A stretch of DNA of 64,000 bases from Macrostomum lignano (GCA_002269645.1 NIVC01001804.1:42978-106977), one strand, 5' to 3'; shown: positions 13,801 to 52,749, counted from the stretch's first letter. Notes: generated from the letters alone by a model not told the origin. Numbers and translations: made by a program.

Positions 13801-15054
13801 GAGTGAGCTCACAACTTGGTGGTGACCTTGCTGTGATGCAAAGTAGAGAGGTGAGCAGCCATCGCTTCGTTGAAGATTGACGTCAGCTTGTGCTTTGATG
13901 AGTGAGCTCACAACTTGGTGGTGACCATTGTGTGATGCAATTAGGAGAGGTGAAGCGTCTTGGATTTGTTGAAGATTGATGTCAGCTTGTGCTTTGATGA
14001 GTGAGCTCACAACTTGGTGGTGACCTTGCTGTGATGCAATGTAGAGAGGTGAGCAGCCATCGCTCCGTTGAAGATTGACGTCAGCTTGTGCTTTGATGAG
14101 TGAGCTCACAACTTGGTGGTGACCTTGCTGTGATGCAAAGTAGAGAGGTGAGCAGCCATCGCTCCGTTGAAGATTGACGTCAGCTTGTGCTTTGATGAGT
14201 GAGCTCACAACTTGGTGGTGACCATTGTGTGATGCAATTAGGAGAGGTGAAGCGTCTTTGATTTGTTGAAGATTGATGTCAGCTTGTGCTTTGATGAGTG
14301 AGCTCACAACTTGGTGGTGACCTTGCTGTGATGCAATGTAGAGAGGTGAGCAGCCATCGCTCCGTTGAAGATTGACGTCAGCTTGTGCTTTGATGAGTGA
14401 GCTCACAACTTGGTGGTGACCTTGCTGTGATGCAAAGTAGAGAGGTGAGCAGCCATCGCTCCGTTGAAGATTGACGTCAGCTTGTGCTTTGATGAGTGAG
14501 CTTACAACTTGGTGGTGACCTTGCTGTGATGCAAAGTAGAGAGGTGAGCAGCCATCGCTCCGTTGAAGATTGACGTCAGCTTGTGCTTTGATGAGTGAGC
14601 TCACAACTTGGTGGTGACCCATCAGTGATGCAATGTAGAGAGGTGAAGCGCCTTTGATTTGTTGAAGATTGACGTCAGCTTGTGCTTTGATGAGTGCGCT
14701 CACAACTTGGTGGTGACCATTTTGTGATGCAATGTAGAGGGGTGAATAGCCATCGGCTTCTTGAAGATTGACGTCAGCTCGGGCTTGAATGAACATTTCA
14801 ACAATTTTGTCTTTTCCCATTGCACACGCAAAGTGAAGCGGCGAGAATGTCATCTCATTGATTCTGAAGAGCCTATCAACGTTAGAAGGAATCTGCAGGT
14901 ATCGTGAAATTTTTGTTTCATTTTCGAACATAACGGCTTCCAGGATCTCCTGCTGATCAGTACCATCAAGGCCCTCGCTTTGGCCTGCGGACCTGCCGAA
15001 GGTCTGCTTCAGAACTGCTGCAATCGCTGTCAAGATTCTCCAAAGAGCTTCCAT
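9700..15054 (-). CDS. Ankyrin-repeat / Mab-21 (cGAS-like receptor type) nucleotidyltransferase fusion, with one frameshift near 10310
   Basis: Exons: 15054-13007 (donor GG|GTAAGT, phase 2), optional 12888-12790 (99 nt, phase 2-2), 12085-11742 (phase 2-1), 10822 to about 9700 (phase 1 acceptor TTTTTACAG|CC). Motifs: GSYSEG...SDIDV, ELRVSTSFLE, LKYLVK, LKSYHVKT, MNHFF. Confidence 0.72.
11742..12085 (-). CDS. Nucleotidyltransferase catalytic exon (GS...DxD)
   Basis: CSPSDSELSEQLHSALEQSGFTESRAALQSAAADALQQIL...YFVVGSYSEGWGN...NSDIDVIEL. Acceptor ATTTTAG|A; donor G|GTGAGT. Confidence 0.82.
13007..15054 (-). CDS. Single large exon encoding 18 ankyrin repeats (17 near-identical 99-bp units)
   Basis: Units of xxxxxSPLY(I/F)ASxxGHHQVVSSLIKAQADVNLQ. 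A 98-aa N-terminal part, 17 x 33 aa and a 24-aa tail add up to the 683-aa ORF. Confidence 0.95.
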
Positions 15055-19839: not shown

Positions 19840-22800
19840 CTAGTCGAAGAACTTCTTGTCTTCGTACCTGAAAAAAGAAGTGCAGAGTATAAACTCAGAG
19901 TGTGGATTTCAAATTGCAGAGTGTAAACTCGGAGTGTGGATTTCAAATTGCAGAGTATAAACTCAGAGTGTGGATTTCAAATTGCAGAGTATAAACTCAG
20001 AGTGTGGATTTCAAATTGCAGAGTGTAAACTCAGAGTGTGGATTTCAAATTGCAGAGTGTAAACTCGGAGTGTGGATTTCAAATTGCAGAGTATAAACTC
20101 AGAGTGTGGATTTCAAATTGCAGAGTATAAACTCAGAGTGTGGATTTCAAATTGCAGAGTGTAAACTCAGAGTGTGGATTTCAAATTGCACTATAGTTCT
20201 TACTGCCCATTTATACTACAAAAATTAAAAAATTCCACTCAGAGCAACTGCAGTCAGCTGCTCAAAATTCAATGATGAGCAATAATGCTTTTCAGCGATT
20301 TCGAGCATAGGTCAGAGAGATATTCTCAGTTGCCATGGAAACTCACCCACGCAGCAGCTCAGCCAGCTCGCTGTTTTCCGTCTGTGTGGCCAAATCCAGC
20401 GCAGTCATGCCGTCTCTGTCCTTCAGGCTCCAATCCGCCCCTGAGTCCAGCAGAACCCGACCGACTGCGGCGGTGGTGGCGGGGGGCGCAAAGATGGCTG
20501 CCAGCATGAGGGGAGTCAATTCACAGTATCCTCGATCGTTCCTGGCGTTGGCGGAGGCTCCGGCAGCCAGCAGAGCGGAGGCTGCGGCAGAATTGCCACC
20601 GAAGCCTGCCCAGTGCAGGCAACTATCAGACCTTGAATCCACACAGGTGGGGTCACCCAGCTGCACCAGCTGCTTCCACAGAGCCTCATCACTACACGAG
20701 CTGTTCAGAGCTGCCCACATCAACGCGTTGAGACCACATCTGTCAGGCAGATCGCAGCTGCCGCGGGTCGCCGCTCGCCGCAGCCCCGCCAAGTCACCCG
20801 CCTCGGCCAGCCGCTGCAGTTCCTTTCGATCCGCTTCCTCCTGCAAAGGTGAGCGGGAAATTTGAGCACAGCTGCTCAGCTGCAGCCGCATCGGCACCGC
20901 AGATGCCGCTCACCTGGACTGTCAGGCCGGATAATGAGGCATTTTTTCCCACAACCAGCCGCATCTCCCTGTAACAGTAAAAATGAGCAGCGAATTCGCA
21001 ATTTTCCATATCAGACAACTACGACTGCCAAAATAAAATTTAATTTAGTACGATACTAGAAATCTTCGCCCCCCGATGGGGGGCATCTAGATAGAATCTC
21101 TGGCTCTCTACAAGTATCAAAAAGACGGCCAAATAAAGACTTCACATAGACAATAGAAAAACTGCTCAAATGAAGTGCAATGCAAAAAGAAAACATCCCA
21201 GGACAGCAAGCACCACCAGATAGCAAGCATCTCCAGATAGCAAGCACCCCCCGATAACAACAACAACAACAACAGAGTACGCTGCCAGTTCACAAAAGCA
21301 GCGTCAGAGGGCGCGCTTCAAAGCTTGGGCGCGAACAAAAGCCGCACCGCCGGCAGAGTCCGGGGCGCCGGCGTCAGCCAGCAGACAGTCGACGTAGCGC
21401 CGAGTCCTCGCCTGTCCCCGCCGGTAGGGTGCCTGCAACGTAAGTAGCAGCACCTCCTGCACCGGCTCCGGACAGTTGGCCTCGGCGCGGATGACGTGGC
21501 CTGCCAGCTGGAGTCGCCGACGGCGCAGCAGATCGCTAGGACGGGCCAGGCCGGCGCGATGATAGAGCGCCGTGTTGGTGACTCGCTCGTTGCCGATCTT
21601 GAAGGCGGCGCGCAGCAGGCCAGCGTGCGCCGCGTCGACTTGAGCCTCGAGCGAGTCTGTCAGCGTCCAGGTCTCGGCGTTGTATAACAGGACGGTCTCG
21701 ATCACCGCCTGGAACAGCGCCGCCCTCTGGCGGTCCGGTAGGGCCTCGGACTGCAGGACTGACCTTATAGAACGAAAGGCAGCCCAAGCAAGTCCTCGGC
21801 GACGCCGCAGATCCTCGCGGACGTCGGGAACCAGACCGCCGAGGTAGACGAACTGCTGACATCTTGGAAGCTCACTCGCCTGTCCGTCAGCGCCTCGGCA
21901 GAAGATTGCAGCCTCGGTGTCGTCCGGCACGCATAGCACGACGGTCTTCTGCGTGTTGACCACCAGGCCGACGCTCGCCGCAACGGCAACCAGCCTATCC
22001 AGCTGTCGTTGGGCGCCCTCGACGGTCGAGGACAGCAGGGCGAGGTCATCGGCGTAGCCAAGCACGCTGAGCCGTCTCTCCGGTTGGCGTCGACCCACGC
22101 GTCGCCGCAGCAGGAAGCCGTCGTCGTTGGAAGGCAGAGCAGTCCGTAGCACCCAGTCAAGCACCAGAATAAATAGGAACGGCGCTAGCGTATCTCCCTG
22201 GAGCACCCCGGAGGATGTCTCGAAGAAATCCGATAGGCCGTCCGGTGTTGAGACAGCAGCCGTCGTGCCGTGGTACAGCGCCATGACAGCAGAAATCAGC
22301 AGCTCTGGCACGTTGTACGCACGGAGCACCTCTGGGAGCGCGTCCCTCACGACCGAGTCGAAAGCCTTCCTGAAATCGACGAAGATCAGGATCAGGGTCA
22401 ACTGGCGGATGCGCGCCTCCTCGATGACTCGTCGAAGAGCCAGGATCTGCGTCACTGTGCCGCGATGGGGCCGGAATCCGTTCTGCTCAGGTCGCAGGTA
22501 CGGGTCCAGCACAGGCTGTAACCGCGATAGCAGCATGCGGTTGAACAGCTTCGCGGCGCAGGACTGTAGGCAGATGCCTCGATGCTCCTCGAGCTTGGTG
22601 GTGCCCGGCTTCTTTGGAATGGCGACGATGTGCGCCGTGGTCCATTCGTTTGGCGCCACCTCACCGAAAAGCACGCGGTTCATCACTCTGGCGACCTCAG
22701 TGGCCACGCAGTGGATCCGCAGCGCCTCGGTGGGCACCTCGTCCGGACCAAGCGCTTTGCCGCCCGGCGTCTGCCGAGCGAACTTCACAACGTCGGCTGT

Positions 22801-25800
22801 GCTGACTGGGGCAACATTGAAGCTCTCCTCCGCCGGCAACGGCGTCTCCGGCGGCAGCCTCAGATTTTCTGGAAGCGGAGGGGGCGGCGCGTTGACAATG
22901 GCGGCGAAGAACTCGCGCAGCTCGTTCCTGCGCTCATCCGGAGTGTCGCCTGCCAGGTTGAGCGCAATGCGCCGCTTTCGCCCCGTCAGAGTGTTGATGG
23001 CGGACCAGGCCACGCGCCCTCTGGCATCGGGCCCTGCGGCAGAGACGGCTTGGATGGCGTCATCGACAGCGGACTGCTGCCGCTGCAGGTAGACAGCCGC
23101 CAGAGCCTCCTCCGCCTCGCGAGTTGGCCGCCCACTCAGACGAAGCCTCTCCAGATCTTCCCTCGCTTCGTCGATCGCGGGGTCGTCCTGCCAGACCGGC
23201 TGCCCGCGCTGGGCCGGTCGCATCAGCGGGACTGCTTGCTCCGCAGCGGCTCGAACTGCAGCGCTCACCTCCGCGTACTCGGCTCCTCCACGCTTGTCGC
23301 CCAGCGCAGTGACAAAGGCACCGGCAAAGCGACGTCGCGTCTCGGCGTCTCTGAGCGCGCGGTAGTAGCGCCGCGGTGGCCGCTTTGGCGGACGGTAGAG
23401 CGGGTCCCGAAGCCGAAGGTCGCAGATGAGCAGCCGATGGTCGGACCGCAGAGCCAGCGGCGTAACCCCCCGATAGCAGGCACCCCAGATAGCAAGCATC
23501 CACCTAATAGCAAGCACCCTAAGAAAGCAAGCACCCCCAGATAGCAAGCATCTCCAGATAGCAAGCACCCCAGATAGCAAGCACCCCCAGATAGCTAGAA
23601 CCCCCAAGACAGCAAGCATCCCCCCCCCCCAGATAGCAAGCACCCCCAGATAGCACGCATATCCAGATAGCAAGCACTCCAAGATAGCAGGCACCCCAGA
23701 TAGCAAGCATCCACCTAATAGCAAGCACCCTTAGATAGCAAGCACCCCCAGATAGCACGCATCTCCAGATAGCAAGCACTCCAAGATAGTAGGCACCCCA
23801 GATAGCAAGCATCCACCTAAAAGCAAGCACCCCCAGATAGCTAGAACCCCCAAGATAGCAAGCATCCCCCCCAGATAGCAAGCACCCCGAGATAGCAAGC
23901 ACCCCCAGATAGCAAGCATCCCCAGATAGCAAGCACCCCCAGATAGCAAGCATCCAATTGATAGCAATTATCTATCTTAAATAGCAAGCATCCACCAGAC
24001 AATAAGTATCTAGTGCAACAATTTCCTTAGCTTTATAGTGGCTCCTTTATGATTGGCATGACGCTTCTTTTTACGTTTGTAATTGTCTCCATTATGACAT
24101 GGTGGCTCTTTTATGTTTGACATGGTGGCTTTTTAATGTTTGACCTGGTGGCACTTTAATGTCTGCAATGATGGCTCTTTAATGTCTGACATGGAGTCAG
24201 TTATACGCTTGACATGGTGGCTCTTTAATGTTTGACGTGGTGGCTCTTTTATGTTCGACATGGTGGCTCTTTAATGTTCGACATGGTGGCTCTTTAATGT
24301 TCGACATGGTGGCTCTTTAATGTTCGACATGGTGGCTCTTTAATGTTCGACATGGTGGCTCTTTAATGTTCGACATGGTGGCTCTTTAATGTTTGACATG
24401 CTGGCTCTTTAATCTTTGACATGGTGGCTCTTTAATGTTAGACATGGAGTCACATATATGTTTGACATGGTGGCCTTTAATGTTTGAAATGGTGCCACTT
24501 TTGTTTGACATTGTGCTTCTTTTATGTTTAGCAATTTGTGTTTTTAAGGTTTTTGAATAAAAATATCTTTTTGCACTACTAAGATTCGAATTGAGGTCGC
24601 TGCATTAGCAGTCCAGTCTGTTCGCATCTAGGCTATCTCTTGTCGATTGGAGGACATGAATAGTGGCACTTATAATTCAATTCTTATAGCAAATCTGTTA
24701 GAGTAGAAAGCTATGACATAATCAATTAGTATCAGTCTCAATTTAAGTTAGCAATATGGTTACGCAATTTAAATCAAGTCGTGTGTTCATTTCTTTGGCA
24801 CTGTTTTCAACTTGCTGTGATGCAATCTTTATCAGAATTGAAATTCAGTCAGTCAGGTTTTTCTCTAGCATTCTTACAATGCATTTCAGGTCGAAAGAGC
24901 TGCTTGACATTTGCAGAAAATCATATTTTTCGAGTATTTAATCCCTTTAATATTGATCAATTTCTTAGCCAAGATGCATGCACCATCCCAGGAAAATTTT
25001 GATCGAATGGTGCAAGTTTGAAGAGAATCGGTTGAGCCATTCTCGAAAAAATCAATTACACGCACGCACAAATACAGCGCAAAATTAGTATATAGAAAAA
25101 AAGTTTCATGATAGATTTAGTAAACAGAAACTAGCAATCTAGTGCGGCCCGGGCGCCCAATAAGCAAGGAGCAAAAATAGTTCATGGAAAACAATAAATA
25201 AAGCACATTTTCTTAGGAACCAATTCCTTCTTCACTTTTAAAAATCACCTTATTTGTGTAAAATTGTCACGGACAAAGGTGTTTGCTATGAATCACTTTT
25301 TCTCTAAAATTAACAAACAGACAACAAAATATAGCTCCCTCTAAATAGAAAATATTCCCAAGACAGCAAGCATCCCCCAGACAGCAAGCATCACCCCAGA
25401 TAGCAAGCATCCCCCAGATAGCAAGCATTACCCCAGATAGCAAGCATCACCCCAGATAGCAAGCATCACCCCAGATGGCAAGCATCACCCCAGATAGCAA
25501 GCATCTGCAGACAGCAAGCATCCCCCAGATAGAAGCATCCATCCAGATCGCAAGCATCCTGCAGATAGCAAGCATCCCCCAGATAGAAGCATCCACCCAG
25601 ATAGCAAGCATTCTGCAGATAGCAAGCATCCCCCAGATATTGTTGAAGCATCCTGAAGATAGCAAGCACCCCCCCCCCAGATATTATAGAAGCATCCACC
25701 CAGATAGCAAGCATCCTGCAGATAGCAAGAATCCCTAAATAGCAAGCATCCCTGGATAAAAAGAATCCCATACATGTAGCCAGTGCCCCCTCTCCCAAAT

Positions 25801-34800: not shown

Positions 34801-37222
34801 AATTAAAATTTTTTCAGCATTTAGTACGACTCACTAATCAATATTCGATACATATCGGCAGAATTTTGCAGAACTCTGGATTTAGCAATGCCTTCAGCAG
34901 TTTAGCAGCATTGTCTGTAGTTTAGCAAGTTCATGCTTTAAATGGAGCTAGGCAACACCCATTGATGAGACCAGCAAAACTTGAAGCAGTTTTACAAATC
35001 AAATTTGCTTAGTAGCTTGTGCCGATTAGCAAAAATAATTAATTGCTACTTAATAAAAAATGCTTCAATCGCTAATAGATGTAATCGAAAGATGTTCCAA
35101 TTAGTCGATACAAAAGTTACAAATAAAAATTAATTAATTAAAATTTAATTGTTTGCAGCGAGGTTGTCTCGAACCTGGGACCTTACGCCTAGCCTAAACC
35201 TAGTGCCTACAGTGCGGCTACTCCGCCTATTGATGGAAAGGCGAGAAAATCAGCCATATAAGCTTCGGCACTGCAATCAAATACATAGCAGTGATAGGCT
35301 GCTCAGTGCGCAGGCAGAGCCAATGCACAGTTGAGTGAAATCTATAAATAGCAATTGTCTATGCAGTCCGTCAGTCAGCCAGGGTCAGAATGTACACACG
35401 CAGCCAGAATGTACACATGCTGCACTGAGCATTTTTCTCTCCCTTGCACACTGCAGCCAGTATTGAAACTTACACAGTGGAGAGAGAAAATTTATGGCGC
35501 AATGTCAATTGGAGTTTCAATTCAAGTTAAATAGAGTTTTCCTATCAGTTGGCACTGGCGCAATCATTAAAATTGGCTGTGAAGTTTTTTCACTGCGCGC
35601 AGGCTGATACAATTTGCATTAAAAAAGCCTATTTAAAACAGTTTTTCAAATCCAATTAGCATCCCTTTAGCATTAAAGCAGATATAAGAAATTTTAACTG
35701 TCTTTTTTTCCAGACAATTTTAAATCTTTTGGCGAAAACGCGATCAAAATTAATCAAGAATTGCACTCTCTAGAGCGTTACAGACAGACAAACAGACAAA
35801 CAGAAAACAGACAAACAGACAAACAGACAAACAGACAAACAGACAAACAGACAAACAGACAAACAGACAAACAGACAAACAGACAAACAGACAAACAGAC
35901 AAACAGACAAACAGACAAACAGACAAACAGAAAACAGACAAACAGACAAACAGATCTTAGCGATTTAGTATAGGTGGAATGGATGGATGGATGGAGGATG
36001 GATGGATTTCTAATTATCTGAGCTGCTCGCAGATGGAGTTTCTAAGAAAATCAGAAAAAATCAGCATTGGCGAGAGCGCATCCGATTTCTCACACGCAGC
36101 TCATTTTCCATTTTTGCAGCATGATTTTCCTTCCACCTCACAATGTCTATCAAGGCACTCACGCACAGCCTCCCAGTTCTCCATCTGCAGCTCAACCCAC
36201 ACACTCTCACTGCACACCGAGGCCCTACAGCTTCCATTCTCGACTGAGATCAACCGGCACCCCATTGGCTAAGAGGCAGCCAGCCAATCACAGCTCTCGC
36301 CCATCAAGCAGTCAGTCAGAGACAAGCTCAGCTGACTGGCTCTGATTGGCTGGCCTGAGACTGCAGCACTGGCCACCGCAGCAGAATGCTGCAAAACTTG
36401 ATGGACACAGCAGCGAACTGCTCACTTACCGCTCGATGTAGCTGGCCAGCTCTGAGTGGCCGCTGAGCCTCGCCAGGTCCAACGCCGTCCGACCCTCGCG
36501 ATCCTGCAGTCCGAGCAGCCGCGACCTCTTCGAGTTTCCGTGATTCAAGCATTCATTGAATTTAAACTGCCTAAGCAGGTGCAGCAGGTGCTTGGCGCAT
36601 TTCCAGCGTCCAGTCCGCGCCGCCTCCATCAGCGGAGTGGCGCCGTTGTCGTTCCGCAGCCACTTCGCATCGAAAGACAGCAGCGTCAGCAGACGCAGGT
36701 GGTCCTGCCGGGCTGCTAGGTGCGCAGCCGTGTCGCCGTTCGCGTCAGCCGCCTTGGGGTTCGCGGCCAGCTTAAATAAGTACAAGATGCACTTTTCAGT
36801 GTGCACGGGAGTCTCAGGAGCGTCGGCCACCAGCATGAGGACGGTCCGACGATCTGCATCAGCGCTGGTGACCAGCTGGCGCGTTGCCAGCCGCCGCACC
36901 TGTCCGAAGTCACCTCGGATGACGTCGTGGGCGAGAGTATGGAGATCGGCTGGTGAGTCTCCGACGCTTGCCCGGTTGCTGGGGTCCGGCTGAGTGAGTT
37001 CCTGCAACTGCAATTAAGCACTAAAGCTGCACATTGAAACATGTGAGTGAGAACCAAAGATATTTTTCAAATGGATTGCTTTAACTCACAAAAAAATAAT
37101 ATTTCAAACAAAAGAATGCTACAAAACTTACATTCTTACAAAGAATCACCCTATGTACAATATAAGGTAAAACTTACCTTGTAATCAGAATAGTATATCA
37201 CCTTAGAGGCCGCACTGCCCAT
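19840..37222 (-). CDS. P2: ankyrin-only paralog of the ANK-caspase (399 aa) with an N-terminal MGSAASK exon and a stop in exon 5
   Basis: Exons: 37222-37178 (45 nt), 37007-36430 (578), 20968-20914 (55), 20840-20347 (494), 19867-19840 (28, ending in TAG). Total 1200 nt = 400 codons. The phases match, and remnants of the paralogous intron 2 survive at 25097-25130 and about 35995-36420. Confidence 0.68.
19882..20190 (+). repeat. 34-bp minisatellite in P2 intron 4, about 9 units
   Basis: AAACTCAGAGTGTGGATTTCAAATTGCAGAGTRT units starting at 19891, 19925 and so on. Confidence 0.92.
20347..20840 (-). CDS. P2 exon 4: ANK-A domain
   Basis: EEADRKELQRL...DSCLHWAGFGGNSAAASALLAAGASANARN...LAELLRG; donor GG|GTGAGT. 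Confidence 0.85.
21056..25096 (-). mobile_element. Non-autonomous Helitron unit H1 (interrupted by an RTE)
   Basis: Minus-strand 3' end GCCCCCCATCGGGGGGC-GAAGATTT-CTAG|T at 21056; 5' end TCTATATACTAA at 25096. Contains internal 18-bp and 23-bp satellites. Confidence 0.7.
21257..23465 (-). mobile_element. 5'-truncated RTE-clade non-LTR retrotransposon with an intact RT frame
   Basis: The ORF from about 23460 to 21304 has the end of the endonuclease (SDH), EQNGFR, DFRKAFDS, GVLQGDTLAPFLF and YADD. It has a 3' stem-loop (ACGCTGC...GCAGCGT), a (TTG)n tail, and a 10-bp TSD CCCCCCGATA at 21247-21256 and 23466-23475. Confidence 0.9.
23466..31810 (+). repeat. 18-bp GATAGCAAGCATCCCCCA satellite arrays (about 23466-24010, 25360-25860, 27120-28340, 30900-31810)
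   Basis: Direct tandem units, one array per Helitron unit. They are the source of the GMLAIW/GGCLLS pseudo-ORFs. Confidence 0.92.
24090..32960 (+). repeat. 23-bp GACATGGTGGCTCTTTAATGTTT satellite arrays (about 24090-24530, 28420-30170, 31910-32960); 24-bp variant at 26010-26300
   Basis: Direct tandem units without spacers, each following an 18-bp array inside a Helitron unit. Confidence 0.92.
25131..35974 (-). mobile_element. Head-to-tail array of four non-autonomous Helitron units (25131-26977, 26978-30779, 30780-33576, 33577 to about 35974)
   Basis: Three minus-strand junctions read hairpin...CTAG|TC(C/T)..ATACTAAAAATG with no intervening bases. The last unit is divergent: a different satellite at about 33940-34520 and a CAGACAAA microsatellite head. 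Confidence 0.68.
36430..37007 (-). CDS. P2 exon 2 (ANK-B), copy 1
   Basis: 578 nt; acceptor AATTGCAG|TTG; donor CG|GTAAGT. Confidence 0.85.
37178..37222 (-). CDS. P2 exon 1, copy 1: MGSAASKVIYYSDYK
   Basis: AAAAATG GGC AGT GCG GCC TCT AAG...TAC AAG|GTAAGT. 45 nt, phase 0, in frame with exon 2. Confidence 0.7.
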
Positions 37223-39222
37223 TTTTAAAGACTCGAGCAGTTAATCAACTGGAAAATCAAAATGCATGAGCAGCTGCGTCAACTCAAACTCAACAGATTA
37301 TATAGCGGCCTCAGAAGACATTGTCAGAGAGATGCACTGCCTGCGCCTCATTGGCTGAATGCAAACCCAGTGTCTCTGTTTCTGATTCTCTGCCGTACAG
37401 AATGCATACTACTCACGGCAGTAGAAGTTAGATTGTAGATATTATTTTCACTTTCGCATAATACTTTTTTCTGAATTTCTCTGTTGTAATACATGGCATA
37501 CAATGATAAAACAACAACAACAAAATACGTGCTCCGCGTCACAGTGCGCGCCTCAAAGGTAGGTCTCGAATGAACGCCCCGCCGCCGACCGAATCTGGGG
37601 CGCCGGCGTCAGCCAGCAGGCAGTCGACGAATCGCCGAGTGCGGGCTTGCCCCCCCCCCCCACCGGTAGGGTGCCTGCAGCGTCAATAGCAGCACCTCCT
37701 GCATCGGTTGTGGGAAGTACGTTCGGCTCTGATGATGTGGAATGCAAGCTGGAGTCGCCGACGGCGCAACAGGTCGCTTGGACGAACCAGGCCGTCATGG
37801 TGATAGAAAGCTGCGTTGGTCACTCGCTCGTTGCCGATCCTGAAGGCAGCGCTTAGCAGGTCAGCGTGCGCCGCGTCAACTTGTTGCTTGAGCAACTCCA
37901 TCAGCGTCCAGGTCTCGGCGTTGTACAACAGGACGGTCTCGATCACCGCCTGGAAAAACGCCAGGCGGTTTGCAGCGAGGTTGTCTCGAACCTGGGACCT
38001 TACGCCTAGCCTAAACCTAGTGCCTACAGTGCGGCTACTCCGCCTATTGATGGAAAGGCGAGAAAATCAGCCATAAACCTTCGGCACTGCAGTCAAATAC
38101 ATAGCAGTGATGGGCTGCTCAGTGCGCAGGCAGAGCCAATGCACAGTTGAGTGAAATCTATAAATAGCAATTGTCTATGCAGTCCGCCAGTCAGCCAGGG
38201 TCAGAATGTACACACGCAGCCAGAATGTACACATGCTGCACTGAGCATTTTTCTCTCCCTTGCACACTGCAGCCAGTATTGAAACTTACACAGTGGAGAG
38301 AGAAAATTTATGGCGCAATGTCAATTGGAGTTTCAATTCAAGTTAAATAGAGTTTTCCTATCAGTTGGCACTGGCGCAATCATTAAAATTGGCTGTGAAG
38401 TTTTTTCACTGCGCGCAGGCTGATACAATTTGCATTAAAAAAGCCTATTTAAAACAGTTTTTCAAATCCAATTAGCATCCCTTTAGCATTAAAGCAGATA
38501 TAAGAAATTTTAACTGTCTTTTTTTCCAGACAATTTTAAATCTTTTGGCGAAAACGCGATCAAAATTGGTCAAGAATTGCACTCTCTAAAGCGTTACAGA
38601 CAGACAAACAGACAAACAGACAAACAGACAAACAGACAAACAGACAAACAGACAAACAGACAAACAGACAAACAGACAAACAGACAAACAGACAAACAGA
38701 CAAACAGACAAACAGACAAACAGAAAACAGACAAACAGACAAACAGATCTTAGCGATTTAGTATAGGTGGAATGGATGGATGGATGGAGGATGGATGGAT
38801 TTCTAATTATCTGAGCTGCTCGCAGATGGAGTTTCTAAGAAAATCAGAAAAAATCAGCATTGGCGAGAGCGCATCCGATTTCTCACACGCAGCTCATTTT
38901 CCATTTTTGCAGCATGATTTTCCTTCCACCTCACAATGTCTATCAAGGCACTCACGCACAGCCTCCCAGTTCTCCATCTGCAGCTCAACCCACACACTCT
39001 CACTGCACACCGAGGCCCTACAGCTTCCATTCTCGACTGAGATCAACCGGCACCCCATTGGCTAAGAGGCAGCCAGCCAATCACAGCTCTCGCCCATCAA
39101 GCAGTCAGTCAGAGACAAGCTCAGCTGACTGGCTCTGATTGGCTGGCCTGAGACTGCAGCACTGGCCACCGCAGCAGAATGCTGCAAAACTTGATGGACA
39201 CAGCAGCGAACTGCTCACTTAC

Positions 39223-40015
39223 CGCTCGATGTAGCTGGCCAGCTCTGAGTGGCCGCTGAGCCTCGCCAGGTCCAACGCCGTCCGACCCTCGCGATCCTGC
39301 AGTCCGAGCAGCCGCGACCTCTTCGAGTTTCCGTGATTCAAGCATTCATTGAATTTAAACTGCCTAAGCAGGTGCAGCAGGTGCTTGGCGCATTTCCAGC
39401 GTCCAGTCCGCGCCGCCTCCATCAGCGGAGTGGCGCCGTTGTCGTTCCGCAGCCACTTCGCATCGAAAGACAGCAGCGTCAGCAGACGCAGGTGGTCCTG
39501 CCGGGCTGCTAGGTGCGCAGCCGTGTCGCCGTTCGCGTCAGCCGCCTTGGGGTTCGCGGCCAGCTTAAATAAGTACAAGATGCACTTTTCAGTGTGCACG
39601 GGAGTCTCAGGAGCGTCGGCCACCAGCATGAGGACGGTCCGACGATCTGCATCAGCGCTGGTGACCAGCTGGCGCGTTGCCAGCCGCCGCACCTGTCCGA
39701 AGTCACCTCGGATGACGTCGTGGGCGAGAGTATGGAGATCGGCTGGTGAGTCTCCGACGCTTGCCCGGTTGCTGGGGTCCGGCTGAGTGAGTTCCTGCAA
39801 CTGCAATTAAGCACTAAAGCTGCACATTGAAACATGTGAGTGAGAACCAAAGATATTTTTCAAATGGATTGCTTTAACTCACAAAAAAATAATATTTCAA
39901 ACAAAAGAATGCTACAAAACTTACATTCTTACAAAGAATCACCCTATGTACAATATAAGGTAAAACTTACCTTGTAATCAGAATAGTATATCACCTTAGA
40001 GGCCGCACTGCCCAT
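39223..40015 (-). CDS. P2 exon 1 (40015-39971) and exon 2 (39800-39223), copy 2
   Basis: Same exon sequences and splice sites as copy 1. Confidence 0.7.
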
Positions 40016-42014
40016 TTTTAAAGACTCGAGCAGTTAATCAACTGGAAAATCAAAATGCATGAGCAGCTGCGTCAACTCAAACTCAACAGATTATATAGCG
40101 GCCTCAGAAGACATTGTCAGAGAGATGCACTGCCTGCGCCTCATTGGCTGAATGCAAACCCAGTGTCTCTGTTTCTGATTCTCTGCCGTACAGAATGCAT
40201 ACTACTCACGGCAGTAGAAGTTAGATTGTAGATATTATTTTCACTTTCGCATAATACTTTTTTCTGAATTTCTCTGTTGTAATACATGGCATACAATGAT
40301 AAAACAACAACAACAAAATACGTGCTCCGCGTCACAGTGCGCGCCTCAAAGGTAGGTCTCGAATGAACGCCCCGCCGCCGACCGAATCTGGGGCGCCGGC
40401 GTCAGCCAGCAGGCAGTCGACGAATCGCCGAGTGCGGGCTTGCCCCCCCCCCCACCGGTAGGGTGCCTGCAGCGTCAATAGCAGCACCTCCTGCATCGGT
40501 TGTGGGAAGTACGTTCGGCTCTGATGATGTGGAATGCAAGCTGGAGTCGCCGACGGCGCAACAGGTCGCTTGGACGAACCAGGCCGTCATGGTGATAGAA
40601 AGCTGCGTTGGTCACTCGCTCGTTGCCGATCCTGAAGGCAGCGCTTAGCAGGTCAGCGTGCGCCGCGTCAACTTGTTGCTTGAGCAACTCCATCAGCGTC
40701 CAGGTCTCGGCGTTGTACAACAGGACGGTCTCGATCACCGCCTGGAAAAACGCCAGGCGGTTTGCAGCGAGGTTGTCTCGAACCTGGGACCTTACGCCTA
40801 GCCTAAACCTAGTGCCTACAGTGCGGCTACTCCGCCTATTGATGGAAAGGCGAGAAAATCAGCCATAAACCTTCGGCACTGCAGTCAAATACATAGCAGT
40901 GATGGGCTGCTCAGTGCGCAGGCAGAGCCAATGCACAGTTGAGTGAAATCTATAAATAGCAATTGTCTATGCAGTCCGCCAGTCAGCCAGGGTCAGAATG
41001 TACACACGCAGCCAGAATGTACACATGCTGCACTGAGCATTTTTCTCTCCCTTGCACACTGCAGCCAGTATTGAAACTTACACAGTGGAGAGAGAAAATT
41101 TATGGCGCAATGTCAATTGGAGTTTCAATTCAAGTTAAATAGAGTTTTCCTATCAGTTGGCACTGGCGCAATCATTAAAATTGGCTGTGAAGTTTTTTCA
41201 CTGCGCGCAGGCTGATACAATTTGCATTAAAAAAGCCTATTTAAAACAGTTTTTCAAATCCAATTAGCATCCCTTTAGCATTAAAGCAGATATAAGAAAT
41301 TTTAACTGTCTTTTTTTCCAGACAATTTTAAATCTTTTGGCGAAAACGCGATCAAAATTGGTCAAGAATTGCACTCTCTAAAGCGTTACAGACAGACAAA
41401 CAGACAAACAGACAAACAGACAAACAGACAAACAGACAAACAGACAAACAGACAAACAGACAAACAGACAAACAGACAAACAGACAAACAGACAAACAGA
41501 CAAACAGACAAACAGAAAACAGACAAACAGACAAACAGATCTTAGCGATTTAGTATAGGTGGAATGGATGGATGGATGGAGGATGGATGGATTTCTAATT
41601 ATCTGAGCTGCTCGCAGATGGAGTTTCTAAGAAAATCAGAAAAAATCAGCATTGGCGAGAGCGCATCCGATTTCTCACACGCAGCTCATTTTCCATTTTT
41701 GCAGCATGATTTTCCTTCCACCTCACAATGTCTATCAAGGCACTCACGCACAGCCTCCCAGTTCTCCATCTGCAGCTCAACCCACACACTCTCACTGCAC
41801 ACCGAGGCCCTACAGCTTCCATTCTCGACTGAGATCAACCGGCACCCCATTGGCTAAGAGGCAGCCAGCCAATCACAGCTCTCGCCCATCAAGCAGTCAG
41901 TCAGAGACAAGCTCAGCTGACTGGCTCTGATTGGCTGGCCTGAGACTGCAGCACTGGCCACCGCAGCAGAATGCTGCAAAACTTGATGGACACAGCAGCG
42001 AACTGCTCACTTAC

Positions 42015-42807
42015 CGCTCGATGTAGCTGGCCAGCTCTGAGTGGCCGCTGAGCCTCGCCAGGTCCAACGCCGTCCGACCCTCGCGATCCTGCAGTCCGAG
42101 CAGCCGCGACCTCTTCGAGTTTCCGTGATTCAAGCATTCATTGAATTTAAACTGCCTAAGCAGGTGCAGCAGGTGCTTGGCGCATTTCCAGCGTCCAGTC
42201 CGCGCCGCCTCCATCAGCGGAGTGGCGCCGTTGTCGTTCCGCAGCCACTTCGCATCGAAAGACAGCAGCGTCAGCAGACGCAGGTGGTCCTGCCGGGCTG
42301 CTAGGTGCGCAGCCGTGTCGCCGTTCGCGTCAGCCGCCTTGGGGTTCGCGGCCAGCTTAAATAAGTACAAGATGCACTTTTCAGTGTGCACGGGAGTCTC
42401 AGGAGCGTCGGCCACCAGCATGAGGACGGTCCGACGATCTGCATCAGCGCTGGTGACCAGCTGGCGCGTTGCCAGCCGCCGCACCTGTCCGAAGTCACCT
42501 CGGATGACGTCGTGGGCGAGAGTATGGAGATCGGCTGGTGAGTCTCCGACGCTTGCCCGGTTGCTGGGGTCCGGCTGAGTGAGTTCCTGCAACTGCAATT
42601 AAGCACTAAAGCTGCACATTGAAACATGTGAGTGAGAACCAAAGATATTTTTCAAATGGATTGCTTTAACTCACAAAAAAATAATATTTCAAACAAAAGA
42701 ATGCTACAAAACTTACATTCTTACAAAGAATCACCCTATGTACAATATAAGGTAAAACTTACCTTGTAATCAGAATAGTATATCACCTTAGAGGCCGCAC
42801 TGCCCAT
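42015..42807 (-). CDS. P2 exon 1 (42807-42763) and exon 2 (42592-42015), copy 3
   Basis: Same exon sequences and splice sites as copy 1. Confidence 0.7.
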
Positions 42808-43089
42808 TTTTAAAGACTCGAGCAGTTAATCAACTGGAAAATCAAAATGCATGAGCAGCTGCGTCAACTCAAACTCAACAGATTATATAGCGGCCTCAGA
42901 AGACATTGTCAGAGAGATGCACTGCCTGCGCCTCATTGGCTGAATGCAAACCCAGTGTCTCTGTTTCTGATTCTCTGCCGTACAGAATGCATACTACTCA
43001 CGGCAGTAGAAGTTAGATTGTAGATATTATTTTCACTTTCGCATAATACTTTTTTCTGAATTTCTCTGTTGTAATACATGGCATACAAT

Positions 43090-43850
43090 GATAAAACAAC
43101 AACAACAAAATACGTGCTCCGCGTCACAGTGCGCGCCTCAAAGGTAGGTCTCGAATGAACGCCCCGCCGCCGACCGAATCTGGGGCGCCGGCGTCAGCCA
43201 GCAGGCAGTCGACGAATCGCCGAGTGCGGGCTTGCCCCCCCCCCACCGGTAGGGTGCCTGCAGCGTCAATAGCAGCACCTCCTGCATCGGTTGTGGGAAG
43301 TACGTTCGGCTCTGATGATGTGGAATGCAAGCTGGAGTCGCCGACGGCGCAACAGGTCGCTTGGACGAACCAGGCCGTCATGGTGATAGAAAGCTGCGTT
43401 GGTCACTCGCTCGTTGCCGATCCTGAAGGCAGCGCTTAGCAGGTCAGCGTGCGCCGCGTCAACTTGTTGCTTGAGCAACTCCATCAGCGTCCAGGTCTCG
43501 GCGTTGTACAACAGGACGGTCTCGATCACCGCCTGGAAAAACGCCACCCTCTGGCGGTCAGGTAGGCCCTTGGATTGCAAGACTGCCCTCACAGAATAAA
43601 AGGCAGCCCATGACGTCAAGAACTAGACCGCCGAGGAAGTCGAACTGCTGACAACACGAAAGCTCCGTCGCCGGGCCATCTGCGCCTTGACTCATAAATG
43701 CAACCTCGATGTCGTCCGGCACGCAGGGCACAACGGTTTTCTGTGTATTGACCACCAGACCGACAGCTTGTACAGTTGTTTCTGGGCGCCCTCGACCGTT
43801 CAGGACAGCAGGACGAGATCGTCAGCGTAGCCAAGCACGCTGAGCCGCCT
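43090..43850 (-). mobile_element. Degenerate RTE 3' fragment (shorter copies at 37510-37967 and about 40305-40759)
   Basis: VIETVLLYNAETWTL...VDAAHADLL and SVLGYADDL-like sequence homologous to 21304-22100; (TTG)n tail; frameshifted. Confidence 0.85.
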
Positions 43851-47921: not shown

Positions 47922-48374
47922 CTAAACTTTCCGAGCTCTTTCTGGATCGAAGCTAACAAGTCGTGAAAGCTGGTCGACCTTCTGCGGCGTAAGATGAAAT
48001 AGGCCGTCTTCCATCCGAACTTTCGTTTGCTGCAAGTGGCCGCTTACCACAGTCATGATGGTATTTAGGTCGAGCTCACGAAAGTTTTCCTCGATGAAAT
48101 CGCAAACAGTCTGCACGTACACCGAACCCGTGTCGGGGCTTCTAAAGGCGGCTGAGCCTGGAATATTGGCATAGCAAACCAAAACGTCGCCCTTTTCGGG
48201 AAGAACTGCAGTGTTGCACACTGGAGCGGGTGCCTCATCCGTTTCTACACGAGAATTGGGCAGAACAACTTGGTCGCGATGGCTTCCGCGACAGGCCTGG
48301 ATGAAGAACACCTTTGGCTTTCCTTCGAGGCTGCGGCAGACAGACGTCTGTGAAGTGGTGGTGAAGTCTTGGGC
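47922..48374 (-). CDS. P3 last exon: QACRG, VETD linker, small subunit
   Basis: AQDFTTTSQTSVCRSLEGKPKVFFIQACRG...SRVETDEAP...GDVLVCYA...FRSPDTGSVYVQTVC. Confidence 0.92.
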   Translation of the reverse strand, partial: AQDFTTTSQTSVCRSLEGKPKVFFIQACRGSHRDQVVLPNSRVETDEAPAPVCNTAVLPEKGDVLVCYANIPGSAAFRSPDTGSVYVQTVCDFIEENFRELDLNTIMTVVSGHLQQTKVRMEDGLFHLTPQKVDQLSRLVSFDPERARKV

Positions 48375-51300
48375 CTTTGAAACAATAAGTATGCAGTGTA
48401 CACTAGACTTTTCTAAATGCGAAAAACAAGTTCATTCTACGTGACCTACGCGCACTCGTTACCTTGGCCGTTAATTTAAACTTTCGCTTCAAATGACCCT
48501 TCTATTGATTCAATATTATGCATTTCTATTTGGGAGAATTTTAATATTACAATTTTTGTTTATGTCTTGATAAAAATATAAAAGATGATATTCTTGGCAA
48601 TACGCTCGTAGTTGGGCTTACCTGGAACCTATCAGTCAGATATTGAATGTGGTAGGGCAACCCGTCCCTACCGTAGATGCAGTCTTGGCTGCCGTGCGCC
48701 ATCATGAAGCAGACAAAGCTGCCGTGCTTGGCAAGGTCAGGTGATTTCTTTATCTCACTGAGGAAATCATCTATCTCCGCAGCAGTGAGGTTCTCTTTTA
48801 TCCAGACGATGAAGCGCAGACTCTCGAATACCTGTTTTACTCGTTCAACATCGCGAACCGAACCTTGACGCTCTTTGTGACTGAATGTGATGTGACTTCC
48901 GGAGTCGTACCTGCTGATGTTGATGATCAGGCAGTAGCCTTGCGGGTCCGTAACTGGATAGAAATTTCCTTTGAGCCTGGAATGCAGCAGATGCTCAATA
49001 TCTCGTATACATGTACTTTCTATTGTATCAAGGCCAAACAATACAATGTAGTGGCACCTTGAGCGTTGAGGTTGGACTGGTCTGCCACGCACAGCTTCTG
49101 TAGGATTTCTAAAAGATTTTCATATTGACATAGGAATAAATTCAATATAGGCTGGTATATTGAATATTTGTAAGCACTTCCCCAAGACCACGAGAAAAAT
49201 ATCTTTAACTTTGACTCACCGATCGGGTTCATCATCGCTTGGTTCCTCGCCAGGGGCATGGTCCGTGAAAACGTTTCGTCTGAAATGGCCAAAAAGGGTA
49301 AGCAGTTCTCTCAGCTGTGTGCTGTAGCTGTGTGCTGTAGCTGTGTGTGCTGTAGCTGTGTGTGTGTGTGTGTGTGTGCTGTAGCTGTGTGTGCTGTAGC
49401 TGTGTGCTGTAGCTGTGTGCTGTAGCTGTGTGCTGTAGCTGTGTGTGCTGTAGCTGTGTGTGCTGTAGCTGTGTGCTGTAGATGTATGCTGTAGCTGTGT
49501 GTGCTGTAGCTGTGTGTGCTGTGGCTGTGTGTGCTGTGGCTGTGTGTGCTGTGGCTGTGTGTGCTGTAGCTGTGTGTGCTGTGGCTGTGTGTGCTGTGGC
49601 TATGTGTGCTGAGGCTGTGTACTGAGGGAACTCACGGCAGTGCCAGAGGCTTGTCGAAGTAAATCTTGCCGTCGTACCTAAAAGGCAGTGCGGTTTCTGA
49701 AGTCAGGGAAAGTTGCGTGAGCCGATGCTCTTTGTTAAAATCTATCTGTTTTATCGATTGTCATTCTGTTGAATTTGTGGTTATCGTGCAGCAGCCGTAA
49801 ATTACGAGCTTTATACTCAACAGCATTGAAAAAGTCGCCACTCTGCACCAGTGAACAATTTCTCTTAAACTATTCTGAAATCAAAAAAATACGAGAAAAC
49901 TGAGGGCTAGCTTTAATTCGTCCTCGCACCGTCCGATTCCCCCCACTTCATTCCTCAACCCAAGTATGTGGCGTGGCGTAGCCAAAGTTGCATTACTAGC
50001 AAGACTGAGAGACTTCATCTGCACACTCGAAGGTGGCGACCATAGACGGAATCTTTCAGATGCTGCTGAGTATATATTGTTACTATGGTTTACCATAATA
50101 CTTGTATGTCTATGGTTGAAGTTGGGATGGGGGTGTGGGGGCGAAGCCCCCACATTCTTACCATAGAAAAAAATTTCATTAAGAAATTTCTCGAGTCACG
50201 AAGGAAGAGAAGAGAGAAGCTCGCTTATTTAGATACATATAATAATCCTTGCAATATGTCCGGGAAAGTGATCGATTAAATCCCGCAAAATAAAATCTAT
50301 GTCAATAACCTCCCTGAAAGTGAGCTTTAAATTGGTTTAATGACATTAACTGCCCGCTAATTTGCATTAAAGCAAGTTTGACTCCTGCAAGCGGGCTTAA
50401 ACGTAGTCTATGGGATTAAAAAGCAAGAATAAGTGCCCAGCGGGCACAAAGGTCATGGTACAATGCAAATTAGCGGGCAATTATGTCATTAACTGCCCGC
50501 TAATTTTGTCCCACTTTGTCAAGGACACAAATGTCTATGTTTATGGCACAATAATAGTAATACCCATGCTTTGCGGGCGTTAATGAGAAATCCTCCTAAC
50601 GCCGCCCTCTGATTTTCCCATTACGCTCGTAACGCCCTTCAAGCATGGGTATTAATGTACTATCACTCCTTGTCTTTGAGTTATTTTAATAATTGAATCA
50701 TTTACTGTTTGTCAATGATAGATCAAAGTCAGAGAGACATTCTCAGTCGCCATGGAAACTCACCCACGCAGCAGCTCAGCCAGTTCCTTCCTACCCTCCT
50801 TTTTGGCCAAATCCAGCGCAGTCCTGCCGCGCCCGTCCTTCAGGCTCCAATCCACCCCCGAGTCCAGCAGAACCCGACCGACTGCGGCGGCGGTGGCGGG
50901 GGGCGCATGGATGGCTGCCCACGAGAGGGCCGTGGATTCCCACTGATTCCTGGCATTGGCGGAGGCTCCGGCAGCCAGCAGAGCGGAGGCTGCGGCAGAA
51001 TTGCCAGCCCTGGCTGCATGGTGCAGACAACTGCAAGCCCATATATTCGCACAGGTGGGGTCACCCAGCTGCACCAGCTGCTTCCACAGAGCCTCATCAC
51101 GGCACGAGCTGTTCCGAGCTGCGTACATCAGTGCGGTGAAACCCCAGTTGTCAGGCAGGTCGCAGCGGCCGCGGGTCACCGCTCGCCGTAGCCTCGCCGA
51201 GTCGCCCGCTTCGGCCAGCCGCTGCAGTTCCTTTCGATCCGCCTCCTCCTGCAAAAGCAAGCGGGAAATTTGAGCACAGCTGCTCAGCTGCAGCCGCATC

Positions 51301-52749
51301 GGCACCGCAGATGCCGCTCACCTGGGCTGTCAGGCCGGAGATATAGCCATTTTTTCCCACAACCAGCCGCATCTCCCTGCAACAGTAAAAAAGTGAGCGG
51401 CAAATTTGCAATTTTCCTAAATCTGACAACTGGCCGCCAAAATTAAAATTTATTATTTACCATAGAAGTTTTATGGTAAATTTTAGAAAATATAAACTGG
51501 CAATTAGGCGGTTAAGGCCCCTTCGGGGGACCTGTACCTCCTTGTATGCCCCAGAGTATTTGTGAGACATTTGTGAAAAAGCATCCCCCAGATGGCAAGT
51601 ATATCCCAAAAACAAGCACCCGGATCCCCGATATAAATGCAACATAGTTTTGAAGCTAAAAATGGAATAAAGAATTTAAATAAACTACATGTAGCTTCTG
51701 AGCTTTAAGTCTTGACATCTCAGCAATTCCCCATGAGCCTTGACATCTCAGCAATTCCATTATGAGCCTTGTCATCTCAGCAATTCCATTATGAGCCTTG
51801 ACATCTTTGCAATTGGCCTTGACATCTCATCAATTCCCCCCAAGGTTCGCTTTTAAATGTGTCACACAGACACTCACTCTTGGTATATATTGGATTCCTA
51901 ATTATCTAATTAGCTGCTCACAGATGGACTTTTCAAAAGAACTGCAGCAGCGAACTGCTCACTCACCGCTCGATGTAGCTGGCCAGCTCTGAGTGGCCGC
52001 TGAGCCTCGCCAGGTCCGACGCCGTCCGACCCTCGCGATTTTTCAGTCCGAGCAGCCGCGACCTCTTCGAGTTTCCGTGCTGTCTGCACTCATTGAACAT
52101 TGCCTGCCTGAGCAGGTGCAGCAGGTGCTTGGCGCATTTCCAGCTTCCAGTCCGCGCCGCCTCCATCAGCGGAGTGGCGCCGTTGTCGTTCCGCAGCCAC
52201 TTCGCATCGAACGACAGCAGCGTCAGCAGCCGCAGGTGGTCCCGCCGGGCTGCCAGGTGCGCAGCCGTGTCACCGTTCGCGTCAGCCGCCTTGGAGTTCG
52301 CGCCCAGCTTAAATAAGTACAAGATGCACTTTTCAGTGTGCACGGGAGTCTCAGGAGCGTCGGCCACCAGCATGAGGACGGTCCGACGAGCTGCATCAGC
52401 TCTGGTGACCAGCTGGCGCGTTGCCAGCCGCCGCACCTGTCCGAAGTCACCTCGGATGGCGTCGTGGGCGAGAGTCTGGAGATCGGCTGGTGAGTCTCCG
52501 ACGCTTTCCCGGTTGCTGGGGTCCGGCTGAGTGAGTTTCTGCAACTGCAATTGAGACACCTGGGAGTTACATCAAAGTACTGAAATTTTTTGAGTCAACT
52601 TGCACAAGCAACCGGAGTCGCCGACTGTAGATAATTACTACTACATGTATTCAGTTTCTGTCGCTTCAACTTACCGCAGAGTTAGGGAAGTCGGTAATTA
52701 TTTCTTCGTCTTCTGACGATGAATCAGAATCGTCTGAGGAGCTTGACAT
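47922..52749 (-). CDS. P3: ankyrin-ankyrin-caspase, 8 exons, 744 aa, catalytic His/Cys intact
   Basis: Exons: 52749-52675 (75 nt), 52544-51967 (578; alternative acceptor 52559), 51376-51322 (55), 51248-50764 (485), 49677-49636 (42), 49279-49220 (60), 49108-48622 (487), 48374-47922 (453). Total 2235 nt = 745 codons, all AG/GT with matching phases. Contains MAHG and QACRG. Confidence 0.82.
48622..49108 (-). CDS. P3 exon 7: caspase large subunit
   Basis: PQGYCLIINISRY, ERQGSVRDV, SFVCFMMAHG; donor CAG|GTAAGC. Confidence 0.9.
49314..49622 (+). repeat. (TG)nCTGTAGC minisatellite in P3 intron 5
   Basis: Same unit as 1293-1785 in a shorter array. Confidence 0.93.
50764..51248 (-). CDS. P3 exon 4: ANK-A domain
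   Basis: CSCLHHAARAGNSAAASALLAAGASANARN; donor GG|GTGAGT. Confidence 0.87.
51967..52544 (-). CDS. P3 exon 2: ANK-B domain
   Basis: 578 nt; DTAAHLAARRDH, GATPLMEAARTG; donor CG|GTGAGT. Confidence 0.87.

Follow-up and report, generated by a model that had tools for sequence, protein, structure and literature searches.

The closest described relatives of the gene considered here are the 'ANK caspases', a flatworm-specific clade of proteins that is sister to the DED caspases (PMC11463336, Genome Biol Evol 2024, evae204). The first Schistosoma representative is credited, as cited in that publication, to Lee et al. 2014. ANK caspases are stated to occur in parasitic flatworms only and to be lacking in free-living species, and a caspase from Macrostomum lignano that has a 'protein kinase pro-domain' is placed as sister to them (PMC11463336). 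In the literature searched, the ANK-caspase concept was not met beyond this one paper. Here we examine a 64,000-nucleotide (nt) stretch of M. lignano DNA (GCA_002269645.1, NIVC01001804.1:42978-106977), called the window throughout, in which positions 47922-52749 of the minus strand are predicted to hold a single, intact and unannotated ANK-caspase gene composed of nine exons. Judging from its sequence, we assign this interpretation a probability of roughly 0.78.

Like the published ANK caspases, the protein predicted from this locus carries a long ankyrin prodomain instead of a CARD or DED, comes from a flatworm lineage and has a catalytic domain near that of caspase-8. In the gene model, an ankyrin prodomain and a caspase reside on one polypeptide, which is the arrangement that defines the class. 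Furthermore, an initiator role involving an ankyrin-binding activator has been proposed for the published proteins (PMC11463336), and the same may hold for this one. The new gene differs from those described in that its prodomain is a two-block module of approximately ten helix pairs encoded by five exons, in that its family is expanded and the module is also coupled to kinases, and in that its host, according to the title of PMC12896417, is a free-living species. This last difference does not agree with the reported parasite-only distribution, and it questions the published statement more than it questions the membership of the new gene. Protein searches retrieved no parasite (neodermatan) ANK caspases, nor did any appear among the 150 best matches of a full HMMER search, which were scanned for ANK repeats and for the module.

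Four open reading frames (ORFs) on the minus strand mark the locus, two of them ankyrin-like (51963-52559 and 50760-51305) and two caspase-like (48547-49092 and 47922-48311). A preliminary description of this DNA had proposed that the four are exons of one gene, and this proposal holds, as canonical GT-AG introns join them into one open frame. The supported chain, whose joins were scripted, consists of nine coding exons separated by eight introns and extends from an ATG at 52749 to a TAG at 47924-47922. The resulting 2142-nt reading frame is interrupted by neither a stop nor a frameshift and encodes 713 amino acids. Each of the 16 splice sites is canonical, their phases are compatible, and a chain with this many phased canonical sites is far beyond what is expected by chance.

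The first four exons (all coordinates refer to the window) encode the N-terminal tail and the ankyrin repeats. Exon 1 (52675-52749; 75 nt, residues 1-25) specifies an acidic, serine-rich tail and ends in phase 0 at the donor TCTGCG/gtaagt. Its start context, gcgctttgccATGTC, is conserved in exon 1 of P1, another copy of the gene in the window, and the first exon of the P1 model is likewise rich in serine. Exon 2 (51967-52559; 593 nt, residues 26-223; donor CGAGCG/gtgagt) corresponds to the first ankyrin block, Ank1, with approximately five helix pairs, and its protein sequence is 82-93% identical to the Ank1 exons of paralogs. The two ankyrin blocks are joined by exon 3 (51322-51376; 55 nt, residues 223-241), which encodes the connector EMRLVVGKNGYISGLTAQ and has equivalents in models derived from transcripts, namely P0121/P0001, P0002 and P0004. 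Exon 4 (50764-51248; 485 nt, residues 242-403; donor GCGTGG/gtgagt) provides the second block, Ank2, again with approximately five helix pairs. It is the most variable exon of the gene, with a protein identity to paralogs of 57-77% and a ratio of nonsynonymous to synonymous divergence (omega) of approximately 1.1.

Three small exons lead from the ankyrin blocks to the protease. Exon 5 (49636-49677; 42 nt, residues 403-417) encodes the hinge YDGKIYFDKPLALP and is the last exon held in common with paralogs that carry a kinase; reading through its donor at this locus would add a proline and then a stop. Exon 6 (49220-49279; 60 nt, residues 417-437) encodes an acidic linker, RNVFTDHAPGEEPSDDEPD, that includes the candidate aspartate cleavage site DEPD at residues 433-436, and its acidic motif is kept in P0001, P0002, P0134 and P0135. 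Exon 6b (49058-49108; 51 nt, residues 437-454) continues the linker with NPTEAVRGRPVQPQRSR and lies in phase between the acceptor cttttag/AAATCC and the donor CTCAAG/gtgcca. Alignment with P1 and mapping onto paralog DNA reveal that exon 6b is positionally homologous to exons in the transcript-derived models of P1 and P0002. The protease itself is divided between exon 7 (48622-48976; 355 nt, residues 454-572), which begins in phase at the acceptor ttccag/GCTCAA and encodes the p20 part, and exon 8 (47922-48347; 426 nt, residues 573-713 plus the stop codon), which encodes the QACRG motif, the intersubunit linker and the p10 part.

This chain departs from the preliminary description at two junctions and in its length. 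Three bridging exons of 55, 42 and 60 nt had been recognized and do have canonical AG and GT borders in the correct phase, but a fourth, the 51-nt exon 6b at 49108-49058, had been missed. The earlier total of 745 codons (744 amino acids, seven junctions) depends on a p20 exon that begins at 49093, a position that is preceded by GC rather than AG and that requires reading through the 81-nt intron between exons 6b and 7, which is open in frame. The nearest AG dinucleotides (49099-98 and 49096-95, giving acceptors at 49097 and 49094) are out of phase for the p20 exon. We therefore replaced that model with one of 713 amino acids and eight junctions. Joining exon 6 directly to 48976 also preserves the frame and yields 705 amino acids, but this version was dropped because paralog models show the additional exon 6b. 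The p10 acceptor, previously set at 48374, was placed at 48347 (cacttcacag/ACG) because all paralogs (P0001, P0014, P0017 and P0027 among them) and human caspase-7 agree there, reading ...RFQ followed by TSVCRSLEGKPK. The acceptor at 48374 is canonical and in phase, but it adds the residues AQDFTTTSQ, which occur in no paralog and not in caspase-7; it is retained as a possible alternative that would give a protein of 722 amino acids.

The splice donors also explain why the gene was first seen in pieces. All four phase-2 donors (51967, 50764, 49636 and 49220) have the form NN/GTGAGT, such that an unspliced message immediately encounters an in-frame TGA, and the exons therefore appear as separate, closed ORFs. 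The earlier observation that each ankyrin ORF stops inside a donor is thus correct for both 51967 and 50764. It also follows that intron retention is predicted to give truncated products that carry only ankyrin repeats.

Evidence that the ankyrin and caspase exons belong to one transcription unit comes from paralogs and from synteny. P1 (window 2-7245, minus strand) exhibits the same nine-exon chain in full, and the translations of its exons (window 2-6987) are 100% identical to P0121, a 731-amino-acid Ank-Ank-caspase protein in GenBank. A partial version of the chain is found in P2 (20346-20979), and so the recurrence of the exon chain that had been reported for both places is borne out. In addition, a sister contig of the same assembly, NIVC01003438.1 (GCA_002269645.1, Mlig_3_7; regions L001 and L002), is nearly identical to the window, and the flank downstream of its syntenic gene matches the window at 92-97%. 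This syntenic gene is annotated as P0002, whose coding sequence is built from the equivalents of exons 1, 2, 3, 4, 5, 6, 6b and 7. In a global alignment of the two copies, exons 2, 3, 4, 6, 7 and 8 align at 80-90% without gaps, save for three gap columns in exon 8. Most introns reach only 43-65% and contain numerous gaps; the exceptions are the short intron 3 and the microsatellite-bearing intron 5, at approximately 90%. This alignment misplaces exon 5 and aligns exons 1 and 6b poorly.

The GenBank annotation of Mlig_3_7 was built from RNA-seq transcript assemblies rather than from ab initio predictions, with removal of transcripts that overlapped repeats or fell under 0.5 reads per kilobase per million (RPKM) (PMC5730564). 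Since the GenBank models are transcript-derived, two close relatives of the new gene yielded assembled transcripts in which ankyrin exons are spliced to caspase exons, and the models of P1, P0002, P0014 and P0027 all contain this join. The join is thus supported by transcripts in paralogs only, and the RPKM and repeat filter is a plausible reason for the missing model of this particular copy. The exact 713- and 722-residue sequences are absent from a collection of 15 billion proteins, and the best identity in the collections searched is at most 84% over the ankyrin part and at most 73% over the caspase part. All close protein matches are from M. lignano (BOX15_Mlig locus tags; A0A1I8 and A0A267 entries in UniProt). 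The preliminary description had called the gene hidden, which is accurate for this locus, given that no protein is more than 84% identical to it, but not for the architecture, which is already annotated in M. lignano. NCBI and UniProt already contain at least 12 clusters, at 90% identity, of proteins from this species in which ankyrin repeats are combined with Peptidase_C14.

From its N to its C terminus, the predicted protein consists of the acidic tail, two ankyrin blocks, an acidic linker of approximately 50 residues contributed by three mini-exons, and a peptidase C14 domain. A domain search of the spliced protein detects the ANK repeats, and both the tail and the linker are predicted to be disordered. 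Of the approximately 455 residues on the N-terminal side of the caspase domain, approximately 380 are ankyrin repeats, which provides the long prodomain with a protein-interaction module that is typical of initiator caspases. The death fold that such prodomains otherwise carry is lacking, and a paralog model instead points to an ANK solenoid as the N-terminal fold. The precomputed Pfam lists of the family contain only Ank families and PF00656, as expected from the earlier claim that ankyrin repeats take the place of a death-fold prodomain, and neither CARD (PF00619) nor DED (PF01335) appears in the lists of any family member.

The catalytic domain retains the features expected of a C14A caspase, including the p20/p10 domain, the histidine-cysteine dyad with QACxG, and the residues of the S1 pocket. 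Specifically, the dyad comprises His548 within MAHGS (codon 48696-48694) and Cys591 within QACRG (codon 48293-48291), and the S1 residues Arg490 (ERQGS), Gln589 and Arg641 (AFRSP) align with the corresponding positions of caspase-7. Potential processing sites are also present, as the intersubunit linker contains VETD at residues 606-609 (48248-48237) and the prodomain linker contains the conserved acidic motif EEPSDDEPD. These characteristics suggest that the gene encodes an intact and probably active caspase.

The protease shares with caspase-8 the QACxG motif and a long prodomain, and caspase-8 is the best match of its catalytic domain outside Macrostomum. The VETD of its intersubunit linker, in our judgment, resembles the site at which caspase-8 is processed. 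The two differ in that the M. lignano protein lacks death effector domains, and recruitment through FADD to the death-inducing signalling complex (DISC) is therefore not applicable. Database searches likewise returned caspase-8 as the nearest match outside the genus. When a profile of seven family members was compared with the PDB, caspase-8 scored 212 bits, caspase-7 scored 207 and caspase-3 scored 200 (E values of 1e-58 to 1e-62). With the single sequence of the new caspase region as the query, caspase-7 and caspase-3 rank first (E of approximately 6e-29).

Structure prediction was performed on paralog P0001, which is 67% identical to the new protein, and the representative search was made with paralog P0135. 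In the AlphaFold2 model of P0001, the ANK module (residues 45-425) has high per-residue confidence (pLDDT) and approximately five helix pairs in each block; after it come a linker that is disordered (434-478) and a caspase fold whose intersubunit loop is disordered as well. The arrangement of the domains relative to each other is not confidently predicted (pTM of 0.58). The earlier estimate of roughly eight ankyrin repeats is about right, since eight to ten repeats fit the five plus five helix pairs of this model. A Foldseek search matched the caspase part of the model to solved caspases with template-modelling (TM) scores of 0.82-0.87 and the repeats to a fusion of two designed ankyrin repeat proteins (a DARPin-DARPin fusion).

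To compare selection on the different parts of the gene, we applied the Nei-Gojobori method to exons of the window and their homologues in L001, L002 and L003, the last being the locus of a kinase-bearing paralog. The p20 and p10 exons exhibit omega values of 0.31-0.58 at synonymous divergences (dS) of 0.23-0.51, and the p10 exon 8 alone gives 0.33-0.47. Relative to the syntenic copy, omega for the caspase exons is 0.31-0.47 at a dS of 0.3-0.5, which is significantly below 1 for both p20 (P = 6e-4) and p10 (P = 1.6e-5). The protease part is thus under purifying selection now or was so until recently. The ankyrin exons are statistically indistinguishable from an omega of 1: Ank1 has a median of 0.78 at a dS of 0.04-0.08, and Ank2 has a median of 1.11 and a maximum of 2.05 (nominal P = 0.047) at a dS of 0.08-0.32. 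Within the same gene pairs (the syntenic copy and the gene at L003), dS for the ankyrin exons (0.04-0.19) falls far under that for the caspase exons (0.23-0.51), and the Ank1 exon of the new gene has its nearest counterpart in an Ank-kinase gene on another contig (dS of 0.041). The low ankyrin dS relative to the caspase dS therefore points to exon exchange or gene conversion among paralogs, even across contigs.

Several observations weigh against the existence of a functional ANK-caspase gene at this locus. The locus itself is missing from the transcript-derived annotation, and both of its close relatives look damaged (QAGRG in P1 and a premature stop in the syntenic copy). The ankyrin omega values of approximately 0.8-1.1 would fit relaxed constraint as well as diversifying selection, and a hexamer scan, which is uninformative in this regard, revealed no canonical AATAAA within 520 nt past the stop codon. 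The catalytic domain appears nearest to caspase-8, but the margin over caspase-7 and caspase-3 is small enough to caution against a firm assignment, and the activation, cleavage sites and ankyrin partner proposed below are suggested only by analogy with caspase-8. One could imagine that this duplicate is silent or in decay, that it yields no functional protein and that its chain is intact only because the duplication is recent. Such a history would account for its absence from the annotation and from protein collections, for the premature stop of the syntenic copy and the loss of the catalytic cysteine in P1, for the orphan exon copies and the fragment disrupted by a long interspersed nuclear element (LINE) elsewhere in the window, and for ankyrin exons that evolve at an omega of approximately 1. 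It does not sit well with a 2142-nt reading frame that is clean over nine exons with 16 of 16 canonical splice sites, with the retention of every catalytic and S1 residue, or with caspase exons at an omega of 0.31-0.47 relative to a syntenic copy whose dS of 0.3-0.5 is not that of a recent divergence. On balance, we consider decay to be unlikely.

A different possibility is that the region comprises two transcription units, namely an Ank-only gene that ends with exon 4 or 5 and a short-prodomain caspase gene that starts near exon 6, with the join between them being a relic or a rare event. Ank-only paralog models do exist (P0003, P0010 and P0016), and P0003 ends in ...YFDEPQAMP, which is the end of its exon 5 equivalent and recalls the proline-stop read-through of the new gene. 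Moreover, three AATAAA/ATTAAA hexamers lie within intron 4, and spliced-leader trans-splicing in M. lignano can split transcription units. Caspase-only models are also found in UniProt (P0134-P0136), but these have no start methionine, and their first residues are translated from the intron microsatellite (AHTATAHTAT...) or belong to the end of Ank2. They are thus truncated predictions and were not accepted as an argument for a caspase gene of its own. The transcript-derived P1, P0002, P0014 and P0027 join both parts, and exons 5, 6 and 6b would be purposeless outside of a joined message, yet their phase and protein similarity are kept across paralogs. An Ank-only isoform made by retention of intron 5 would be compatible with the fusion and no replacement for it, and we judge two separate units to be highly improbable. 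If the fusion protein is made, its ankyrin module could still act as an inhibitor within the molecule, capping the protease until another caspase cuts the acidic linker, which would imply a downstream, executioner-like role. Work cited in PMC11463336 describes designed ankyrin repeat proteins that bind caspases and inhibit them, the single-sequence search places caspase-7 and caspase-3 first, and the linker has a conserved acidic DExD-like motif. However, the linker of approximately 45 residues in the P0001 model is disordered and connects domains with no confident arrangement (pTM of 0.58), the presence of the same module on kinases argues for a generic partner-binding role, and the family profile slightly favours caspase-8. 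We therefore regard an inhibitory cap as an unlikely explanation.

If instead the gene functions as an initiator-type ANK caspase, as we favour by analogy with other long-prodomain caspases, its ankyrin module would stand in for the death fold as a surface for protein-protein interaction. This surface might recruit or cluster the zymogen, or might keep it inactive. Clustering would then promote dimerisation followed by self-cleavage at VETD, and possibly also at DEPD in the prodomain linker. Because the fast-evolving ankyrin module is exchanged between paralogs, an upstream partner common to the caspase and kinase proteins is suggested, in which case the outputs could be either proteolysis and cell death or signalling by a STE/MAP3K-like kinase. 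An Ank-only isoform that exists besides the fusion is plausible. The suggestion in the preliminary description that ligand binding activates the protease directly is speculation. More tentatively still, the Ank-Ank module might act as a variable sensor in a family of immune-like receptors specific to this lineage, its exons being diversified and passed between paralogs, with orphan Ank exon arrays serving as donors. One recognition module would then be connected directly to a caspase, to a MAP3K-like kinase or to both, and ligand binding would lead to cell death or to stress signalling with no need for death-fold adaptors. It would follow that caspases with an ankyrin prodomain evolved before flatworms became parasites, in contrast to the published inference. 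As a whole, we consider this broader scenario unlikely.

The Ank-caspase architecture is known for flatworms and is already present in the public annotation of M. lignano, including a paralog only 45 kb away. What is new is this locus, the existence of an expanded ANK-caspase family in a free-living flatworm, and a likely counterpart (P0250) of the published kinase-prodomain caspase that carries the same ankyrin module. The locus adds one intact and probably active ANK caspase, as judged from its residues, to the M. lignano gene set, with a corrected exon chain. The family also corrects the published claim regarding distribution, as it occurs in a free-living flatworm that has been called basal (PMC5730564). 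Orthology with the parasite genes would mean that the ankyrin prodomain is older than parasitism. Furthermore, M. lignano is tractable to transgenesis (PMC5730564), and it is therefore a possible experimental system for studying caspase activation without a death-fold adaptor.

The Ank-Ank module is not confined to caspases. In addition to the Ank-caspase clusters noted above, M. lignano has approximately 16 clusters in which the module is coupled to a protein kinase. One such gene, P0004 (L003, NIVC01000414.1: 10001-17354), has the same exons 1-5, including those of 55 and 42 nt, followed by two kinase exons, which places the point of exchange of the module at the phase-2 boundary that follows exon 5. 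Within the 4-kb intron 2 of P0004 lie orphan copies of an Ank2 and an Ank1 exon (L003 11961-12491 and 14028-14558), which echo an orphan array in the window. The combination of ankyrin repeats and a serine/threonine kinase in a signalling protein is also found in RIPK4 and ANKK1. RIPK4 has the reverse order, with an N-terminal kinase of the TKL/RIP type, whereas the kinases of the flatworm paralogs are nearest to MAP3K5/ASK1, PAK and STE20-type kinases.

Both outputs are combined in P0250 (BOX15_Mlig018903, 1060 amino acids), which contains the Ank-Ank module (phmmer E of 3e-49), a kinase and a caspase, in that order. P0250 and the new protein come from the same species and have the same N-terminal module and related caspase domains (34% identical in the alignment), but P0250 has a kinase domain where the new protein has the mini-exon linker. 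Based on its name and architecture, P0250 is probably the counterpart of the published kinase-prodomain caspase. Thus, within one lineage-specific multigene family, the same five-exon module is followed in the message by caspase exons, by a pair of kinase exons, or by both kinds. Other M. lignano relatives have different prodomains. P0233, which is named 'Caspase-8' in UniProt, is a related caspase with a short, canonical ankyrin prodomain, and P0177, a caspase of the same clade, has a prodomain that by our own reading of its sequence is presumably a Rho-type GTPase. The prodomains of P0177, P0233 and P0250 indicate a lineage-specific burst of prodomain shuffling. No kinase or GTPase exons are present in the window.

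Other copies of the module near the gene are in various states of preservation. In P1, the sequence FFIQAGRGS (382-2, minus strand) replaces the catalytic QACRG, so that the dyad is incomplete, and the intersubunit linker has no xxxD site. Located 45 kb from the active-looking copy, P1 looks like a catalytically dead, cFLIP-like pseudo-caspase. cFLIP is a catalytically dead tandem paralog of caspase-8. Both are dead paralogs in which the whole architecture is kept, but the prodomain of P1 is ankyrin rather than DED. In the syntenic copy P0002, a premature TAG interrupts the p20 exon (L001 8506-8859; FIVKVK followed by the stop), and the downstream p10 exon is intact with its QACRG; the protease part of this copy has probably been inactivated.

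Within the window, positions ~35200-43600 hold three tandem units of approximately 2.79 kb, and sampled 300-nt stretches of these are 99-100% identical. Each unit contains one orphan Ank1 exon copy on the minus strand (36429-37013, 39222-39806 and 42014-42598) that lacks Ank2 or caspase exons. Either amplification in the very recent past or an artefact of the assembly accounts for the tandem units, which could donate sequence for gene conversion. P2 (20346-20979, minus strand) consists only of the 55-nt connector exon and an Ank2 exon, and it abuts an 806-amino-acid ORF (21304-23724, minus strand). We take this ORF to be a putative reverse transcriptase of a non-long-terminal-repeat (non-LTR) retrotransposon. 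P2 appears to be a gene fragment beside a LINE insertion.

Two introns of the gene contain tandem repeats. A microsatellite with a 15-nt unit in approximately 21 copies (49316-49620) fills intron 5 almost entirely, and a minisatellite with a 29-nt unit lies inside intron 2 (51711-51835). Elsewhere in the window, an intronless ORF of 683 amino acids (13003-15054, minus strand) encodes approximately 18 near-identical, canonical 33-residue ankyrin repeats (SPLYIASQQGHHQVVSSLIKAQADVNLQRSDGC) that are unrelated to the Ank-Ank module.

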